From the sequence record NC_041917.1: 64,000 bases of DNA; one strand, written 5' to 3'. Position numbers and translations under genes: made by a program. This document shows positions 1-53,712 of this stretch, piece after piece; position 1 is the first letter of the stretch; every line of letters begins with the position of its first letter. Under the pieces are notes generated by a model. It did not search any database. It had not been told where the DNA came from and was given only the letters and a program-made list of their open reading frames with translations.

Positions 1-268
1 TATCTTCTCCTGAAGTCGCATAGTACTTCGCACTTTTTGTTCAATCACCTTTTTTCAAAAATGATAACATGAGGTTCAGGAAAATCTCGAAGGTACGTGA
101 AATCAAATACGAATTCTAAAAAATTTGGAGTACCCTCTAGACTTTTGCTGAGATCTCGAAAGTACAAAAAACATATAAGGAAGTGTGAAAATTTTATTGA
201 ATTGAAAAGTACTAAAGTACTATTTTGTACTGTACAAAAACACAGTACAAAAATAATTGAAATAAACC

Positions 269-297
269 TTGACGTGTTACGGGTGCGATGATATGAT
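269..297 (+). promoter_or_regulatory. sigma70-like promoter with no downstream ORF
   Basis: TTGACG(269-274)-17 nt-TATGAT(292-297). Confidence 0.7.
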
Positions 298-303
298 GTA
301 TCC

Positions 304-470
304 AAGATGAAGAACACAGTTAGACACCTCTCTCGTTGACGCTGTATGAATCATCTAGTACTGGTAAATTGCCGAACATGTTGCCGCATGTTATTACTGG
401 TACGAAATGGGAATACCTTATTCCCCTCTCTCTTTCTCGCTATTGTTCAGGAAAGATTTAGTACTGAACG
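304..470 (+). ncRNA. candidate structured ncRNA
   Basis: Follows the promoter; helices 305-310/351-356, 358-367/394-403, 375-380/387-392, 409-415/419-425, 445-450/464-469; no ORF. Confidence 0.4.
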
Positions 471-748
471 TTTGGAAGTAATACTGTACTAATTAGGATA
501 GTACTTTATAATGAGTTCTCATGAAGCACACGCTGGAGAATATATTATAAAGTACTATCCTTTTTTGCATTGTACTATAAGAATAGAAGTACTAATAGAG
601 TACCTTTTGATAGATGGATTTGTTTTGAGGATTGTCTGAATTTTGGGTGTACTATCCCTATCTGCTATCTATAGATGGATAGACTTCTGGCAGTGTAGAT
701 GTATAGATGGTTGAACGTCTAGACAGCTATCCTTCTGGATGGCTAAAT

Positions 749-788
749 GTCTAAACGTCTAGATGGTTATCCCTCTAGACGTTTAGAC
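749..788. repeat. perfect 15-bp inverted repeat
   Basis: GTCTAAACGTCTAGA(749-763)/TCTAGACGTTTAGAC(774-788), 10-nt loop. Confidence 0.95.
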
Positions 789-982
789 GGCTAAACGCTT
801 TTTTGTCTCGATTTTCCATTAGTTCCCCTTCCGCGTCTAGTTAGTACTAGGCAGAATCGAAAGGCGTCTTTTCGTGTTGACAGAGCTATATTATCAAACG
901 GTGATCCATTATGCAAGGACTTTTTTCAATAAAAATAAATTTGACAAGTACAAACCGGATGTAGTACTATAATCACAACAAA

Positions 983-1007
983 GAGAAATTTGTAGCCCAC
1001 AGGGTGC
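983..1007 (+). repeat. promoter-locked element E1
   Basis: GAGAAAT-TTGTAG-CCCACAGGGTGC; promoter TTGACA 941/TACTAT 965-970. Confidence 0.85.
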
Positions 1008-1070
1008 CAAGATCCGCCTATTAGAAATTAAATGCGAATGAGAATCATTACCGATTATAGGTATATCTCC

Positions 1071-1096
1071 GCACCCTCTGGGGTATCCGATTTCTC
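1071..1096 (-). repeat. promoter-locked element E2
   Basis: Minus strand GAGAAAT-CGGAT-ACCCCAGAGGGTGC; minus promoter TTGCAT(1137-1132)-17-TATTAT(1114-1109). Confidence 0.9.
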
Positions 1097-1520
1097 TCGT
1101 CTGAAATAATAATATCAAAGTACGGTATAAGATGCAAGGACTTTTTTCGTTTTTGGTGAAAATAGTTTAGATCGTTGTATACGTATAAAGGAAAGGATTT
1201 AAAAGGCGAACAGGTGGAGCGGGGCGAAGGTATAGCAGTACTATATAAACGCCGTGTAATGGTTCCTATGCGTTATATGGGGGCATGTACACGTATAAAG
1301 GAAAGAAACCCTATAGCAGAACTATTTTTAAAAAGATTGCATAAAGTACTTGCAAAGGTTTACCGGTATGATAATATCTATCTCGTCAACACGACACCGC
1401 TCTTTAACAACTTGCTAGACAATTACTTGATAGTGATTCTTCTCTTTAGAAATAAGGAAAAAGAAAAACAAAAAAGTACTTGACGGCAAGAATGGAAAGT
1501 GTAGAATGTTGGTTATCGAA

Positions 1521-1651
1521 AGGCGGTAAGGTTCGCCGGATGATAGGAAAGGGTAACAGGGCAAAATAAAGTACTGTTGCAGTGTGAAGCCGAAAGTGCT
1601 CACATAGCCTTATAAAAAGCTTACTAACTGTAAGTGACCTATCTACCGCCT
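1521..1651 (+). ncRNA. candidate multibranch ncRNA
   Basis: Promoter TTGACG 1480/TAGAAT 1502; AGGCGGTA 1521-1528 and GATAGG 1542-1547 pair with contiguous CCTATC-TACCGCCT 1638-1651; three internal hairpins. Confidence 0.6.
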
Positions 1652-1785
1652 AACGATGTAACAAAAAAAAGTTTCTAAGAAGTTGAAAAAAGTACTTGAC
1701 GGATAGAAACGAAACGTAGTAATATGTGTTCAAGCCAAACGGCTTACCAAACAAACTAAACTAAACTTTTAAGAGGATTTAAATC

Positions 1786-3941: not shown

Positions 3942-4334
3942 ATGGAACGTAATGAGCAATTTAGATTAGTTCTTGAAGTACTGGAAAACATGCAAGCTTG
4001 TTTAGATGTTAATGATACATATGTGCGTATCAATGGCAAGAGTTTTAATCTTAATCGACATGCGGGGATCTGCTGGCATGTTCTCGCCTATACTCCTAAT
4101 TGTGATTATTCAGGTATTGGATTAGAATATCTTTCCCCGTTGTTTGTTAGTATGGGCTTACATCCTCATTATCCTGTAGAAATGCAGATCGTTAATGAGT
4201 TAGATCAAGCCCGTTGGATTCATTCAAAAGCAACAGATCAATATAATATCTTGGGCGAAGAAGGAAAGATCCGCCGTAAACTTTTAAAGGATTTGATTCA
4301 GTACTATAAAAAAGAGCTTGCAATTGAATCGTAA
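3942..4334 (+). CDS. hypothetical early protein
   Basis: Own promoter, AAGGA SD. Confidence 0.8.
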   Translation: MERNEQFRLVLEVLENMQACLDVNDTYVRINGKSFNLNRHAGICWHVLAYTPNCDYSGIGLEYLSPLFVSMGLHPHYPVEMQIVNELDQARWIHSKATDQYNILGEEGKIRRKLLKDLIQYYKKELAIES

Positions 4335-4373: not shown

Positions 4374-4829
4374 ATGAATAGCAAACAATTTCAAGATGCA
4401 ACAAGAGAAGCCTTTTTGAAGTACTTCCCAAATGGCTACATTGGTATTTCTAAATTGTCAATGGGTGGCGGTTGTGGTATCTTCTGCGGGTTGATTGGTG
4501 ACATTAATGATGTGGGCGGGAAGATCCGCATGAATGACCCAATGACAGTACGGGCATTCATTCATGATAATTTTTCATTCAATGACGAAACAACTGATTT
4601 AGAAAATGTTGTTATCGAATTCGATGGATCTTGGATCTCAGTACTTCCAGACAATCCACACAATTATTGTCAATCTCACAAGGTGCCTAGTCGCAAGATT
4701 AACGCGGAGCCGTCAAAGGCATTAATTAATCTAGATAAGTACTTTAAACGCTTAAAGGATAGTGTAACCGAACAAGCTGGATTGAATCGTATTATTCAGC
4801 AAGAAAAGATCCCCGCAAAATATCTATAA
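4374..4829 (+). CDS. hypothetical early protein
   Basis: Own promoter, GGAG SD. Confidence 0.8.
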   Translation: MNSKQFQDATREAFLKYFPNGYIGISKLSMGGGCGIFCGLIGDINDVGGKIRMNDPMTVRAFIHDNFSFNDETTDLENVVIEFDGSWISVLPDNPHNYCQSHKVPSRKINAEPSKALINLDKYFKRLKDSVTEQAGLNRIIQQEKIPAKYL

Positions 4830-29454: not shown

Positions 29455-30239
29455 TGTTTTTAAAATTCTTTTTAACACTCAATAATTCAACAGGTAGATT
29501 GGTTGGTGGAAATTCAGGAAAAAATAAATTACTAGTTAGTACTCATAACGATCACAAAAAGGAACGGCATGAGACTATAACATTTAACAATGTACTAGAT
29601 TCATTCATGCGTTCCATTGATAATCCTACTCGTTTCGACTTCGGTCTTAATCAGACTAGAGAAATATTAATCAACATTTCTGATGAAGCAATGTTCCAAT
29701 TAGAAACATTATCTGTACCAGAAAATTGTTATTGTACCTATAATTTAAATACTAAGTTAATTGGATTTGGTAACAATATGGCTGAAGCAGAAGAAGCGAC
29801 ACAGGAAGATAATTTTGGATGGGGATACAAATCTAAAAGTTCTAATAATGATTTATTCTTTAATTATTTTGTTGAGATGCCAACAGTACTACCTTATAAA
29901 TTTACTGTACCTGATGTATTTTATGAGCAAGTACTTCAAGAACTGAAACCATATATTGTTAATGAAAAACTTCATATATTCAAAGGATTCAGTGATTTTG
30001 TACTAAAGAGCAGTAAAGAAATAACTGAGTATTTTGATAATTATTATACTGAAGTTTATGATGAATCTAAGATACGTTCATTATCACCATTTAAGAAGTC
30101 CGAGATGCGTAAAGTGATTGAATGGTTCATGGAGGATGATATTGACATTGTAGCCAATAAAGAATCCTTAGCTATTGAGTATGGTACTATAGGTATTTTG
30201 TGTAGAAAAATAATGAATGTTTCGGGTGAAACGTTCTAA
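29454..30239 (+). CDS. hypothetical protein
   Basis: TAATG coupling. Confidence 0.75.
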   Translation: MFLKFFLTLNNSTGRLVGGNSGKNKLLVSTHNDHKKERHETITFNNVLDSFMRSIDNPTRFDFGLNQTREILINISDEAMFQLETLSVPENCYCTYNLNTKLIGFGNNMAEAEEATQEDNFGWGYKSKSSNNDLFFNYFVEMPTVLPYKFTVPDVFYEQVLQELKPYIVNEKLHIFKGFSDFVLKSSKEITEYFDNYYTEVYDESKIRSLSPFKKSEMRKVIEWFMEDDIDIVANKESLAIEYGTIGILCRKIMNVSGETF

Positions 30240-30260
30240 AAAAATGTGTTATAATATATA

Positions 30261-30287
30261 GGACAGCAAGATAAGCTGTCCTTTTTT
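30261..30287 (+). terminator. intrinsic terminator
   Basis: GGACAGC-AAGATAA-GCTGTCC-TTTTTT. Confidence 0.75.
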
Positions 30288-30920
30288 AATTGAGAAAAAC
30301 TCTGAATGGCCTTGTTAAACAAGGAAGTTTTAACCCTGATCCTATCGAAAAGTAGATGGCAGATGAGTAGATCATTCAGTACGAACAGCAAAAGAAACCC
30401 GTTAGAAGTACGTGCAGTCAATCAAATGCGACATAAGACACTGAGATCACGGCAATGCGGCTGTATAAAGCATGACAGTACTACATAAGTTCATGCCTAG
30501 ATAGACATATAGGATCGCACCTACCTAATGTATAAGGGAGTCAAAAAAATGCGATTGATTTATTACAATATAGATCCGTCCAGAATTTGACAAGTACTGA
30601 AGCTGTTCATGTAGCTTTTGTACTAAGTGTAGTAAGACTACGACCGTTGTATAGAACCGCGATAGGGAGAAACCGGACAACCCGCTTCCGCTCAATTAAG
30701 AAATTCGTGACATGAAATTGCTATGACTATCATCGTCAGTTTTATTCTTCCCTCCCGATGGGGGGATGAAAATGCATCAACAAATCTCGTCAGTACTATT
30801 AAGTAAGTAACTATAAAATGTAAATTCAGAATGAACGTAGTGCTAACGAAGTTCAGAATGAATTTACTGGAACATCGCAAGATGTTCCTTGTATAATGAG
30901 AATCAGCAAAGTACTGATTC
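30286..30920 (+). ncRNA. candidate large structured ncRNA, family unassigned
   Basis: ~650 nt without a credible long ORF; many helices including a GNRA hairpin at 30869-30888. Confidence 0.5.
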
Positions 30921-30939
30921 TATGTAAAGTGAGATGTAA

Positions 30940-31467
30940 ATGAAAGTTGTATACAAATGCAAAAATACGGACACAGTACTTGATTCCGTAGATATGAGTA
31001 CGTTTAATGGTTATATTATTCAAGTGGAGAAAGGAAACAAAATCAGCAATATTACAGAGGTTTATAAGAATGTAGTACTTGCTAAGATTAGTTTACGTCC
31101 CTCCAAAACACCACTCATACACAAAGTTGAATACAATGGTCATATAGAATACCGTTACAATAACAACAATGTTAGTAGTGTTTATTATGAATTTAATGAT
31201 AAAAAATATGGAGAGTACTTAAAATTTGATTTGAATGGAATACTTTTGGATAGGATTTTCTATTACGAAGGAAAGGATGTAACTTCAGATATAATTCAAT
31301 TTCTTGGTTACACTGATGATTTATCTTCATTTAAGAATTATGAATTTAAAGAAGATGAACTGTTTAACATCATGATGAAGTACGGTTTTTATTTTAGATT
31401 TCGCAATGAATCGGAACGGGATAGTTCTGAATTTGACCGTATCACAGAGTACTGTCAACACATATAA
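30940..31467 (+). CDS. hypothetical protein
   Basis: ORF track. Confidence 0.75.
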   Translation: MKVVYKCKNTDTVLDSVDMSTFNGYIIQVEKGNKISNITEVYKNVVLAKISLRPSKTPLIHKVEYNGHIEYRYNNNNVSSVYYEFNDKKYGEYLKFDLNGILLDRIFYYEGKDVTSDIIQFLGYTDDLSSFKNYEFKEDELFNIMMKYGFYFRFRNESERDSSEFDRITEYCQHI

Positions 31468-36561: not shown

Positions 36562-37722
36562 ATGACTAATAAAACCAGTACAGAAATCATGTTTGATGAT
36601 CTGATGACCTTGACTGCAAAAAACGATGCGTTTATGTGGAAAGACTTCACCTCTGTAGGTGGTGGTACTTTTCGTATCTTCTCTTATCGTCTTGCGAGTT
36701 ATTCTGACTTTTTAGAGCGAAATGCTTTAGAATGTCGTGGCAGTATGTTCCTAATTAATGAAGATTGTACATATAATCGTGTTGCATCTCGGACTCCACA
36801 AAAGTTCTTTAATGCATATGAAAATCCGTTCACTATGTATGATAAAAGTATTCTTAGTAATGAGATTGCGATTGTTATGGATAAGCTTGACGGTTCTATT
36901 ATTAGTACTTTCATGGATGTAGATTATATTGTCCGTACTAAATCACATGCATCTTTAAATTCTGATCATGCTTTAAACAGTACTGCATTGCTTCATAAAG
37001 ATAAAGAATTTTACGAAGAAGTATATCAGGCAGAAATTTGCGGATATACGGTTAATATGGAGTATACATCTCCAGAGTTTCGTATTGTTCTTCCATATCA
37101 AGAAGATGGTTTAACAGTATTAAATTTACGTCATCGCCATGATGGAACGTTGTTAATCGGTAAAGAATTGGAAGCTACATTCCCATTACTTTATGCCAGT
37201 TCTGTATTTGCGAAGTACGGTGAAATTGACAGTACTTTTCCAATGCGTGAAACATTGTATGAAAGTATTGAAGCAGTTCGCTCTATGACTGACATTGAGG
37301 GATATGTATTGATCCTTAAAGATGGTCGTATGTGCAAGATTAAAACTGATTGGTACAGTGCATTACATTTTACTAAGGATAGTATTAATGTTGATTCTCG
37401 TCTGTACGAAGCAGTAATTAATGGTGGTTCTGACGATTTAAAACAAATGTTCGGTACTGATTTGTACAGTATGAAAAAGATTGAAAAAATGGAACAGCTT
37501 GTTTTTTCTTGCTATAATAAGCTAGTACATGATGTTGAAACGTTTGTAGAAGCGAACAAACACATGGAACGAAAAGACTATGCTTTAAAAGTTCAGGCAG
37601 AATTACCAAATGAGCTTGGAAAACCAGGTCTAGCATTTAGTCTTTATAATTCTAAGCCCGTAGATTATAAAGGTACGATGTTAAAATACATGAAGGAAGT
37701 CCTTAAAGATTTCGAAGTTTAA
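36562..37722 (+). CDS. rnlA: T4-like RNA ligase 1
   Basis: ECRG..F, KFFNAYEN, MDKLDGSII, EGYV, KIKTDWY. Confidence 0.92.
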   Translation: MTNKTSTEIMFDDLMTLTAKNDAFMWKDFTSVGGGTFRIFSYRLASYSDFLERNALECRGSMFLINEDCTYNRVASRTPQKFFNAYENPFTMYDKSILSNEIAIVMDKLDGSIISTFMDVDYIVRTKSHASLNSDHALNSTALLHKDKEFYEEVYQAEICGYTVNMEYTSPEFRIVLPYQEDGLTVLNLRHRHDGTLLIGKELEATFPLLYASSVFAKYGEIDSTFPMRETLYESIEAVRSMTDIEGYVLILKDGRMCKIKTDWYSALHFTKDSINVDSRLYEAVINGGSDDLKQMFGTDLYSMKKIEKMEQLVFSCYNKLVHDVETFVEANKHMERKDYALKVQAELPNELGKPGLAFSLYNSKPVDYKGTMLKYMKEVLKDFEV

Positions 37723-38216: not shown

Positions 38217-38441
38217 ATGAAAGTAGAAGTAGAACATAGTATTATTCAAGACATGTCGGTAATTAAATTTTTATCTTTAAAAGATTATCACCGAGCACTT
38301 GACTTTTTAGATACGAATGGGTTATCATGGACACCTCTTAAATATAGTTCTCGCTTAGACACCGCTAGTATACGTGTCAGTGAGGGCGTATTAAACATCA
38401 TTACAAATAAATTTGGAATAGGAAAATCATGCCAACATTAA
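38217..38441 (+). CDS. hypothetical protein
   Basis: AGGAG SD. Confidence 0.7.
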   Translation: MKVEVEHSIIQDMSVIKFLSLKDYHRALDFLDTNGLSWTPLKYSSRLDTASIRVSEGVLNIITNKFGIGKSCQH

Positions 38442-39355
38442 CAGTAACAGTAGGACTTCCAGGATGTGGTAAAACCACTTGGGCGAACGAGCAAGTACGT
38501 ACCGCACGGTCTAAGACTGTGAACGTAAATCTTGATGACCTTCGCCAAACAATGGCTGGTTCCCATAGTAACTACAAGTTCCGTAAAGACAACGAACAGT
38601 ACGTGCAAGACGCACAGTACAGTGCAGCGGAACATGCAGCAGCTAATAACTGGAACATCATTGTATCCGACACGAACTTGAATCCTACAGTTCGTGGAAA
38701 GTGGAAAGAATTTGCCAAAAAGCATAATTACACTTATAAAGAACAAAGCTTCTTAGAAGAATTCAAGAAAGATAAAACTTTCTCTCATGATTTCTTTGCA
38801 GTTAAAGGTTTTGTTAAACAGTGTAAAGACCGCAACCTTATGCGTGAGAAATCTGTACCAGAAGATGTAATTGATGGTATGGCTGAAAAGTACTTCTATA
38901 GTGCAATGAAGGTTCAGACACCAACTTTACAAGATTTGGAAGAAGCGATCATTGTAGATATTGATGGTACTCTTGCACATATGGACGGTAAACGTGGCCC
39001 ATACGAAGAAAATAAAGTACTTGTAGATTCACCAGATCCTGAAGTAATTTTGTCAGTACTGGCAGAAAAGAACTTTCTCGGTCGTACAGTGATCATCATG
39101 AGTGGTCGTCATGAAACCTGTAAAGAAGATACTGAAGCATGGTTGGATAAGTATGCTATTCCATACGATCATATCTTCATGCGTGGTGCTGAAGATAGCC
39201 GCTCGGACGACATTGTGAAGTACGAACTTTACATGGAAAATGTACACAACAAATTCAAAGTTGTTAAAGTCTTTGATGATCGCGATCAGGTGGTCGTAAT
39301 GTGGCGGCGTTTGTTGGGTCTTAAAGTTTATCAGGTTGGTTTTGGTAACTTCTAA
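38429..39355 (+). CDS. pseT: polynucleotide 5-kinase/3-phosphatase
   Basis: GLPGCGKTTW P-loop plus DIDGTLA HAD motif, VFDDRDQVV. Confidence 0.95.
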   Translation: MPTLTVTVGLPGCGKTTWANEQVRTARSKTVNVNLDDLRQTMAGSHSNYKFRKDNEQYVQDAQYSAAEHAAANNWNIIVSDTNLNPTVRGKWKEFAKKHNYTYKEQSFLEEFKKDKTFSHDFFAVKGFVKQCKDRNLMREKSVPEDVIDGMAEKYFYSAMKVQTPTLQDLEEAIIVDIDGTLAHMDGKRGPYEENKVLVDSPDPEVILSVLAEKNFLGRTVIIMSGRHETCKEDTEAWLDKYAIPYDHIFMRGAEDSRSDDIVKYELYMENVHNKFKVVKVFDDRDQVVVMWRRLLGLKVYQVGFGNF

Positions 39356-53521: not shown

Positions 53522-53712
53522 AATTAATCTCCTAGAGAATCATTTATATAATAATATTTATCCAGCCAAGGACTAATATATATTTATTAGGATTTCCTTG
53601 ACATAAATGTGAAGATTTGATATACTCTTTTGGTCTTAGAGACAATTAAATCTGAAGTATTTACTGAAAAAAAGTTGAAACATCAGAAAAAAATCTGTTA
53701 TAATATAAACAT

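Follow-up and report, generated by a model that had tools for sequence, protein, structure and literature searches.

A candidate family of large structured RNAs encoded by jumbo phages and bacterial islands

Serratia phage BF is a 357,154-bp Rak2-like jumbo myovirus of the genus Eneladusvirus. Bases 1-64000 of its genome (KY630187.1) were analyzed, and this whole 64,000-nt stretch is called the window below. Between the genes BF_0061 (end 30239) and BF_0062 (start 30940) lies a gap of 700 nt without annotation (30240-30939). It is the only large internal stretch of this kind within the first 41 kb; one other stretch, the 1.8 kb at the very start of the genome (window positions 1-1785), likewise holds no annotated gene. 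What does a phage encode in such a gap? An original prediction, made from the letters of the sequence, had proposed a large non-coding RNA (ncRNA). The comparative data agree with this call: the gap holds a conserved, non-coding region with covariation among 56 homologs and with a promoter of its own. We estimate a probability of about 85% that this locus, here termed copy A, specifies a structured and independently expressed ncRNA. The predicted gene extends from about position 30262 to about 30890 on the plus strand with a core at 30302-30797, corresponding to an RNA of about 520-630 nt.

The flanking genes end and start normally, with the stop codon of BF_0061 at 30237-39 and the ATG of BF_0062 at 30940. 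The gap had been described as free of open reading frames (ORFs). Four ORFs of 56-62 amino acids do occur in the ORF listing of BF, and each of them is hit by one to five stops or frameshifts across eleven orthologs with a single exception, an ORF that is free of stops in phage EJP2, yet shifted out of frame there by a length change. In the gap orthologs the variable sites favor no codon position, the third included, and the lengths of the insertions and deletions in the alignment are not multiples of three. The region is therefore regarded as non-coding, because the ORFs are broken in the orthologs and the variable sites ignore codon position. A decayed gene, which the original prediction had named among the findings that would speak against an RNA, is not indicated by any conserved ORF or codon-position bias. 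The local G+C content is elevated, at 0.357 compared to ~0.30-0.33. In other phage records, small coding sequences (CDSs) have been annotated inside the RNA: g047 and g048 in Yersinia phage fHe-Yen9-04 (L002:755-886, 1024-1236), CDSs in Erwinia phage Kaldavass (L003) and 7t3_0243-0245 (L009). They differ in strand and position among the records, are not conserved and are probably annotation artefacts.

Conservation and covariation of copy A

A blastn search of 50,697 phage records with positions 30200-30960 yielded matches in 62 records, including that of BF (KY630187.1), which is identical at the same coordinates. In 18 of these records more than 80% of the query is covered, at 73-100% identity; the others have a core of ~480 nt in common at ~70%. 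Conservation amounts to 70-90% across at least four jumbo-phage genera. The setting is syntenic in Eneladusvirus, Mimasvirus (GAP32, CBB, XbC2), Asteriusvirus (PBECO4, ph0011, EJP2, fEgEco12) and the 7t3/fENko-Kae01 group, in which a BF_0061 homolog, the RNA and a BF_0062 homolog are followed by a Dam methylase.

Covariation was scored in an alignment of 56 members less than 96% identical, drawn from phage records, IMG/VR, metagenomes and bacterial genomes. For 174,936 column pairs a G-test with average-product correction was calculated, and all ranks given below refer to these pairs. The top 17 are all canonical and located in stacked helices, as are ~45 of the best 63. RNAalifold applied to 12 orthologs identified compensatory changes in 26 of 79 pairs. 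For the 3' half, a separate alignment served to count paired cells against partners slid by 1-3 columns and against 500 shuffles: 95.6% of the cells are paired compared to 36-47% with slid partners, changes on both sides affect 35 of the 42 pairs, and covariation scores 0.62, with at most 0.13 in the controls. None of the 500 shuffles reached these values. Compensatory changes among homologs, which had been suggested as a check of the prediction, were hence found by RNAalifold, G-test and pair counts alike, and they preserve helices beyond the controls. From these data the RNA is predicted to fold into about 15 helices joined by four or five pseudoknots. About 90 nucleotides are invariant, mainly in junctions and loops. 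The invariant blocks include AGTACGAACAGCAAAAGAAACCCGTTAG, CACGGCAATGCGGCT, GATAGACATATAGG, TAAGGGAG and ACGACCGTTG as well as AGAAAC-G--CAACCCGCTT, CATCGTCAG, GGGGGATGAAA and AACAAATCTCGTCA, and are separated in the ortholog alignment by segments or hairpins of variable length.

All elements described in the following are on the plus strand. Every complementary segment of the original prediction was located in the sequence where it had been placed, together with the GNRA hairpin and the extended -10 element. The long-range helix P1 (CUGAAUG/CAUUCAG, 30302-08/30373-79) is one of these segments; a perfect partner is present in 42 of the 56 members, in at least eight sequence versions. Inside P1 are a variable hairpin P1a (30310-14/30320-24) and the hairpin P1b with a conserved GAAAAGUA loop (30336-38/30360-62, 30341-42/30358-59 and 30344-46/30355-57; ranks 13, 24, 34 and 50). 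Three base pairs GUA/UAC flanking the 3' strand of P1 (PK1, 30367-69/30380-82) are 100% canonical. The pair 30368:30381 reads UA in 35, CG in 11 and AU in 10 members (rank 5), and 30369:30380 reads AU in 46 and UA in 10; PK1 together with P1 would form an H-type pseudoknot stacked on P1.

The P2 domain (30385..30464) consists of ACAGC/GCUGU (30385-89/30460-64) and CCGU/ACGG (30399-402/30449-52), which are 100% and 94% canonical, with the pairs 30385:64, 30386:63 and 30387:62 at ranks 33, 11 and 12. Its internal loops AAAAGAAAC and CAAUGCG are invariant, whereas the inner hairpin varies in length. A tertiary contact of three base pairs, T1, is predicted between AUG (30455-57) and CAU (30506-08) of the invariant GAUAGACAUAUA block: 30457:30506 is GC in 46 and AU in 10 members, thus 100% canonical (rank 39), and the other two pairs are invariant and carry no covariation information. 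The hairpin P3 (GCAUGA/UCAUGC, 30470-75/30491-96), also foreseen in the original prediction, shows double changes in all six pairs and holds the top-scoring pair of the alignment (ranks 1, 6, 19, 36, 43 and 54). Its loop nucleotides UAC pair with GUA in PK2 (30482-84/30530-32; ranks 8, 22 and 7; 100%, 100% and 89% canonical, with two to four pair types each), and this GUA sits directly upstream of the invariant linker UAAGGGA (30533-39). P4 is a hairpin UAGG/CCUA (30510..30523) that is 97% canonical, with AU in 38, GC in 15 and GU in 3 members at 30512:30521. P5 is closed by 30540-41/30590-91 (ranks 61 and 32) and carries an optional sub-domain with a stem at ~30553-60/30573-80, a conserved loop UACAAUAUAG and a tail CCGUCCAGAAUUUGA; the stem is imperfect in BF and 69% canonical.

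In the 3' half, the 13-bp hairpin P6 (30593..30624) has 12 of 13 pairs changed on both sides and 90% of the cells paired. Its loop UUCAUG pairs with CAUGAA in PK3 (30606-11/30711-16), where all six pairs show double changes and 99.1% of the cells are paired (ranks 10, 14, 17, 27 and 35). The hairpin P7 (UGUAG/CUACG with loop UAAGA, 30628..30642) shows double changes in four of five pairs. PK4 connects GUUGU of the invariant CGACCGUUG block with ACAAC in the 15-nt loop of P9 (30646-50/30677-81) and is 100% paired; 30650:30677 is CG in 39 and UA in 14-15 members (rank 15), and its remaining pairs are near-invariant. P8 (CGCGA/UCGUG, 30658..30709) encloses P9 and P10 and has double changes in five of five pairs (ranks 2 and 4). 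P9 (GGGAG/CUUCC, 30665-69/30685-89, invariant loop AAACCGGACAACCCG) is 100% paired, and all three pairs of P10 (30692-94/30699-701) show double changes. Of two further hairpins, P11 (30722..30737; consensus GACGA-CUAUCA-UCGUC, in BF UAUGA...UCGUC) varies little and is 84% canonical, and P12 (30745..30770), a C-rich/G-rich hairpin CCUCCC/GGGGGG (30751-56/30760-65) followed by an invariant AUGAAA, is 95% paired. P12 corresponds to a C/G hairpin noticed earlier. Its pairs are either G-C or G-U, with all variation in the C strand and none in the G-run. An extension of P12 by UUCUU/AUGAA was rejected at just 52% canonical pairs. A candidate P13 (GAUGA/UCGUC, 30765-69/30787-91) is 92% paired in the main family and near-invariant, and is not kept in a divergent subfamily described below.

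Two 13-nt repeats, R1 (CUAUCAUCGUCAG, 30727-39), which forms the 3' half of P11, and R2 (CAAAUCUCGUCAG, 30781-93), a near-invariant 3' block, both end in UCGUCAG. Among 64 sequences they covary by the same letter at four positions (UU/CC, GG/AA, UU/AA and AA/GG): 30730/30785 is UU in 37 and CC in 26, 30739/30793 AA in 32 and GG in 28, and 30736/30790 UU in 56 and AA in 8 sequences. In the divergent subfamily R1 and R2 both read ACGAAG. Such parallel changes may point to one partner that binds both repeats, or to a helix switch in which the repeats pair in turn with a single strand.

The family-wide alignment is poor in the region of P14, a 3' hairpin at 30820..30867 (GUAAAUUC/GAAUUUAC plus UGAAC/GUUCA), and compensatory changes were recorded among orthologs of the A clade. 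The original prediction had described the same hairpin at the DNA level as GTAAATTC (30820-27) and GAATTTAC (30860-67) with nested TGAAC (30832-36) and GTTCA (30851-55). Almost the whole family has the motif GAACG-N-AGUGA (30833-42 in P14), for the most part within the loop of a hairpin. The GNRA hairpin GGAACATC-GCAA-GATGTTCC (30869-88) is the P15 of the present model (GGAACAUC-GCAA-GAUGUUCC) and has compensatory changes in the close orthologs Kaldavass and XbC2 (GGAGCUACC...GGUAGUUCC). For these two 3' hairpins the compensatory versions are TTC/GAA to CAC/GTG to CTC/GAG and ACATC/GATGT to GCTACC/GGTAGT.

Two pairings proposed earlier found no support. GATCCTAT (30338-45) and ATAGGATC (30509-16), which had been thought to cross other helices as a pseudoknot or alternative fold, are 67% canonical and do not covary, and each arm pairs elsewhere; the supposed outermost pairing of TTAATTGAG (30286-94) with CTCAATTAA (30691-99) is 44% canonical, again without covariation. 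Both are chance complementarities. The pseudoknots that covariation supports, PK1 to PK4, are located at sites other than GATCCTAT/ATAGGATC.

Promoter and ends of the predicted transcript

A sigma-70-type promoter with an extended -10 was predicted at 30226..30255 (GTGAAA, 18 nt, TG-n-TATAAT), with 10 of 12 matches plus the TG in the promoter scan. The -10 hexamer is located at 30250-55 within TGTTATAAT (30247-55), the extended -10 already recognized in the original prediction, and would place the transcription start at ~30262. T-TG-TATAAT is unchanged in 12 of 12 orthologs. In the non-redundant set, TGnTAYAMT is found directly upstream of the core in 51 of 56 members and a -10-like hexamer in all 56. 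Copies in bacterial islands (see below) are preceded by TTGAAA-17-TATACT or a near variant (ATGAAA-18-TATACT in Buttiauxella).

A hairpin AGGACAGC/GCTGTCCT followed by T6 was detected by the terminator scan at 30260..30287. It is predicted to act both as the intrinsic terminator of the upstream operon and as the first 5' hairpin of the copy A transcript; the promoter of copy A overlaps this terminator, and the transcript would therefore start with the hairpin. The stem covaries among the orthologs, e.g. from GACAGC/GCTGTC to GACGGT/ATCGTC. In the paralogs B to D an equivalent terminator is located upstream of the promoter. At the other end, the RNA is predicted to terminate after the hairpin at 30869-88, P15 being its probable 3' end or a weak terminator. 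A -10-like TATAAT (30892-97) follows P15 ahead of BF_0062, and the hairpin GAAUCAG/CUGAUUC (30900..30920; segments 30900-06 and 30914-20) lies in the leader of BF_0062. Its two segments are present as originally proposed. The hairpin is kept only in Eneladusvirus and Mimasvirus orthologs and does not covary, and it probably lies outside the ncRNA.

Several observations weigh against an independently expressed, structured RNA. A search for RNA-seq data of BF or a close relative found none, and four wastewater runs labelled as RNA gave only contigs of relatives of 151-300 nt at low depth within 30275-30795, for which a DNA source is possible. The promoter of copy A directly precedes a terminator-like hairpin with T6, and the terminator scan found no canonical terminator at the 3' end, where P15 has no U-tract and was not called; the RNA ends are inferred. 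The minimum free energy (MFE) of the single sequence is only modestly better than that of shuffles (z = -2.1), the MFE fold being incapable of holding pseudoknots. Finally, the null model of the G-test takes no account of phylogeny, and a lineage signal is evident from some non-canonical column pairs with high scores.

The motif TGnTATAAT occurs ten times on the plus strand of the window (9562, 16256, 21379, 27496, 30247, 37510, 41232, 52254, 53696 and 61950) and twice on the minus strand. Upstream of the site at 53696, ~30 nt are similar to the RNA promoter (blastn, 53676-53707). This motif set is consistent with a group of early promoters.

Paralogs in jumbo phages and relatives in bacterial islands

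Pattern scans and nhmmer revealed three to five copies per jumbo-phage genome. For BF, four copies at 30, 174, 259 and 335 kb were counted from one pattern scan (four loci) and from BLAST place counts of three to five per record. Copy A is the only one in the window. Copy D (~174.47-175.19 kb; KY630187.1 ~174470-175185) adjoins EndoVII, copy B (258.72-259.43 kb; 258716-259426) is located upstream of an ADP-ribosylglycohydrolase and copy C (335.26-335.90 kb; 335260-335903) between BF_0518 and BF_0519. Each BF copy occupies its own ORF-free gap of 650-740 nt on the plus strand, with its own promoter and unrelated neighbor genes. In the neighborhood of copy A, RNA ligase 1 (BF_0072, window 36562-37722) and a polynucleotide kinase/phosphatase (BF_0076, 38429-39355) are encoded 6-8 kb downstream; no link between the RNA and these RNA-repair genes was established.

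The paralogs have diverged and are each conserved in synteny; they share every conserved block and differ in optional modules. One conserved module with loop GUACAAUAUAG and tail CCGUCCAAAAUUUGA (window 30553-30589) is located at P5 in the paralogs A, C and D and at P10 in B-type copies (L140:~4440-4480, L029) and some island copies, a few copies having it at both places. In this mobility it resembles the peripheral elements of large ribozymes. A small peptide encoded in the P5 sub-domain (UAAGGGAG, 8 nt, AUG at 30548) was considered and rejected, as the sub-domain is missing in B-type paralogs and the frame is not kept. Between P11 and P12, the RNA of the paralogs D and B contains a hairpin that resembles a terminator and has a run of U6-7 (L148:~4160-4210, L140:~4510-4560). 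Copy A lacks this hairpin, which could give rise to a shorter isoform or be purely structural. In the phylogenetic tree, the copy that CBB carries at the syntenic A site and that of a related contig (L006, L151) cluster with C-type paralogs and not with the other A copies, which hints at gene conversion or replacement between paralogs.

Beyond the isolate phages, a degenerate pattern of 24 bases detected 62 metagenome loci and eight bacterial-genome loci, all of which contain the family. The bacterial hosts are Buttiauxella, Silvania hatchlandensis, Enterobacter chinensis, Serratia fonticola, Serratia sp. 2723, Enterobacteriaceae RIT714 and two contigs of metagenome-assembled genomes (MAGs). 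The RNA, a single self-contained copy with its own promoter, directly follows an integrase, either a tyrosine or a large serine recombinase, in Buttiauxella, Silvania, E. chinensis and RIT714, four of the eight loci. In three of these four it can be seen to face a cI-like S24 repressor gene in convergent orientation, and no gene in its own direction lies downstream. The two fully visible islands, in the Buttiauxella MAG (L234:5930-18400) and in S. hatchlandensis (L237:2496-13206), are ~12 kb in size and consist of integrase, RNA, cI (S24), HTH_35, a 286-amino acid protein, an LprI-like protein and an invertase, with interchangeable integrases. The backbone from the RNA to the invertase is constant, whereas the cargo of anti-phage genes is exchanged: Buttiauxella carries nSTAND3, AbiGi and DUF4238, and Silvania carries DarT, DarG and a UvrD-like helicase. 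In S. fonticola the RNA is located beside a duplicated rof at the edge of a different island with a serine recombinase and two ParB-like genes. Phage structural genes are absent from the islands, which are for this reason viewed as defense islands or satellite-like elements and not as full prophages. The 286-amino acid protein has no match in Pfam, in PHROG or, by tblastn, in the 50,697 phage records, and was dismissed as a partner common to islands and phages.

In the maximum likelihood tree the island copies form one clade (Shimodaira-Hasegawa-like approximate likelihood ratio test, SH-aLRT, 97) that includes a copy from a 349-kb jumbo-phage contig, and among isolate phages the island RNA is matched best by a fifth copy in Xanthomonas phage XaC1. 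Together, these affiliations indicate an exchange between jumbo phages and islands. In a divergent subfamily, which occurs in T4-like phages, the 3' half (P6 to P12) is retained and combined with a different 5' half. Its contigs (L179, L185, L203, L204, L205 and L223) encode a T4-type portal, baseplate proteins, a Dda helicase, DHFR and a phage sigma factor; a pattern scan of IMG/VR detected no member of it. Among 5,426 E. coli genomes the family gave two partial matches, and among 72,556 plasmids none.

Relation to known RNAs and possible roles

Is this RNA a member of a known family? Rfam 15 (4,227 models) was searched with the whole window at gathering thresholds and with selected loci at E ≤ 10. 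At gathering thresholds the window gave no match, in keeping with the original prediction, which had assigned no family. At E ≤ 10 only scattered noise was obtained for copy A, two BF paralogs (B and C), nine orthologs and eight divergent members. The blank Rfam result therefore excludes, among others, membership in ROOL, GOLLD, OLE, HEARO, raiA, group I or II introns, RNase P, tmRNA and 6S RNA. The likeness to ROOL and GOLLD that had been proposed thus extends to the kind, a large phage-borne RNA, and not to membership: neither model matched the window at gathering thresholds or any of these loci even at E ≤ 10, and tRNA adjacency as in ROOL and GOLLD was not observed, as ARAGORN detected neither tRNA nor tmRNA genes anywhere in the 64 kb of the window. 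The models Intron_gpI, Intron_gpII and group-II-D1D4 likewise gave no match at E ≤ 10, and an intron was rejected because no host gene is split and the RNA has its own promoter; in addition, a terminator is located at its 5' edge and the paralogs lie between unrelated genes. A resemblance to CR-I/CR-V of RNase P was not upheld, as the two CCCG-containing blocks are not mutually complementary and no model matched. A literature search covering 8.4 million full texts found no description of the family.

The RNA appears, from its sequence and predicted fold, to represent a new family within a known kind, the large ornate RNAs of unknown function from phages and mobile elements. Unusual for this kind would be the set of several paralogs, the presence in defense islands and the four to five pseudoknots. 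ROOL (RF03087, ~580 nt) is similarly a large structured RNA of phages and prophages whose function is unknown, independent of its neighbors and probably acting through its three-dimensional shape. The present family differs from it in sequence and structure, in occurring in phages of Enterobacterales instead of Firmicutes and the rumen, in lacking nearby tRNA genes and in having three to five diverged paralogs per genome. ROOL forms homo-oligomeric complexes according to cryo-electron microscopy (cryo-EM) (PMC12286853). With GOLLD (RF01998) the family shares the very large and ornate structure and the stand-alone gene in phages; unlike GOLLD (~800 nt, usually beside tRNAs, in Lactobacillales and lake metagenomes), it matches no model. 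GOLLD is expressed in the lytic cycle. RNA decoys such as RNA anti-CRISPRs are comparable as promoter-bearing modules made of RNA only that are common to phages and mobile elements and lie among defense and counter-defense genes. The known decoys, however, are short RNAs that imitate a defined RNA of the host, whereas this RNA is ~10 times larger and mimics nothing recognizable.

What could be its role? Most likely it is an early-expressed, trans-acting folded RNA that serves as decoy, scaffold or ribozyme; any specific function is put forward tentatively at best. The strong sigma-70 promoter suggests that the host RNA polymerase would transcribe the RNA at once on infection and constitutively in the islands. 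Its autonomy from the neighbor genes and its dense tertiary contacts suggest that it would act in trans through a compact three-dimensional fold, and not as the leader of the next gene. The RNA is kept in elements that share no protein, among defense and counter-defense genes. In the preferred mechanism a folded RNA particle, possibly an oligomer of paralogs, would bind or titrate a conserved host factor or a defense or counter-defense factor and so act as decoy, sponge or scaffold. Against this proposal it must be held that it is built on genomic context and that the analysis brought out no partner protein, ligand or target. A more far-reaching version, which we consider unlikely, is a self-assembling or catalytic RNA machine in the conflict of phage and bacterium. 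Its paralogs would form a hetero-oligomer or each neutralize a different host defense, the islands would have captured one paralog to poison or exploit the machine during infection by a jumbo phage, and the UCGUCAG repeats would be sites for a common partner or a helix switch.

Equally doubtful is a large ribozyme that processes itself or acts on another RNA. RNase P RNA and the introns of groups I and II resemble it in having pseudoknots that span long distances, junctions with invariant nucleotides and peripheral modules that can be exchanged. Its size and the multi-pseudoknot architecture with a swappable module are typical of large ribozymes, and the family is kept in lineages without an obvious common protein partner. 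However, none of the defining elements of the large ribozymes was found. No ribozyme model of Rfam matched even at E < 10, no catalytic motif was recognized, no gene is interrupted by the RNA, which has its own promoter and would thus not be an intron, and the few reads aligned contain no joints or skipped segments.

Somewhat less probable still is a primer or R-loop transcript of a replication origin, in which the four copies mark origins as do oriF and oriG of T4 or RNA II of ColE1, and in which the copy of the islands lets the phage replisome replicate them. ColE1 RNA II is ~550 nt long. The size is close to it, and both RNA II and the T4 origin transcripts are promoter-driven and non-coding, with a G-run. 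As with the T4 origins there are several copies per genome; these are spread around the BF genome, each with a strong promoter whatever the local operon, the invariant run of six G is followed by variable A+T-rich DNA, and the islands have no recognizable replication gene. On the other hand, the conserved tertiary structure is far more elaborate than in these transcripts, with five pseudoknots and ~90 invariant loop or junction nucleotides, and we know of no primer RNA that needs so many of either. At copy A the local GC-skew profile has no inflection and the gene orientation does not change, copy number and module content vary among the phages, and visual inspection of the alignments brought up no iterons or repeats, a dedicated repeat search not having been run.

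A long 5' leader, riboswitch- or attenuator-like or a processive antitermination element, for BF_0062, the Dam methylase and the genes downstream is very improbable. Every phage copy is co-directional with the following genes, and no strong terminator separates copy A from BF_0062. A cis-acting leader was nevertheless rejected because the genes downstream of the paralogs A to D are unrelated and the island RNA converges on a repressor gene with nothing co-directional after it. A separate -10-like element and a leader hairpin moreover precede BF_0062, and the RNA with its 500-600 nt is about five times as long as known leaders. The idea that the region is a decayed or unusual protein gene, or that it holds several small genes like those in the records of fHe-Yen9-04 (g047, g048) and Kaldavass, can draw on the ORFs of 56-62 amino acids in BF and on the CDSs in these two records, and is negligible in view of ORFs that are not open in the orthologs, annotated CDSs that differ in position and strand, the even distribution of variable sites over codon positions and a conservation that peaks in the blocks forming covarying stems.

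To our knowledge, very few large structured RNAs of bacteria and phages have been described (OLE, GOLLD, ROOL, HEARO and raiA), and each of them opened new biology. The candidate presented here is unusually well backed by comparative data, with ~15 predicted helices and four to five pseudoknots, and it corrects a probably spurious annotation of small ORFs in several phage records. As a natural RNA of ~500 nt with a dense tertiary network it is a target for cryo-EM and a benchmark for structure prediction. Since it is found in phages that infect E. coli, Salmonella, Serratia, Erwinia, Yersinia and Cronobacter and can be cultivated, the family is experimentally accessible. New are the three to five conserved paralogs per genome and the common occurrence in virulent jumbo phages and in small integrative islands with anti-phage systems. 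The latter points to a role in defense or counter-defense, and the RNA is probably a new player in the conflict between phages and bacteria.

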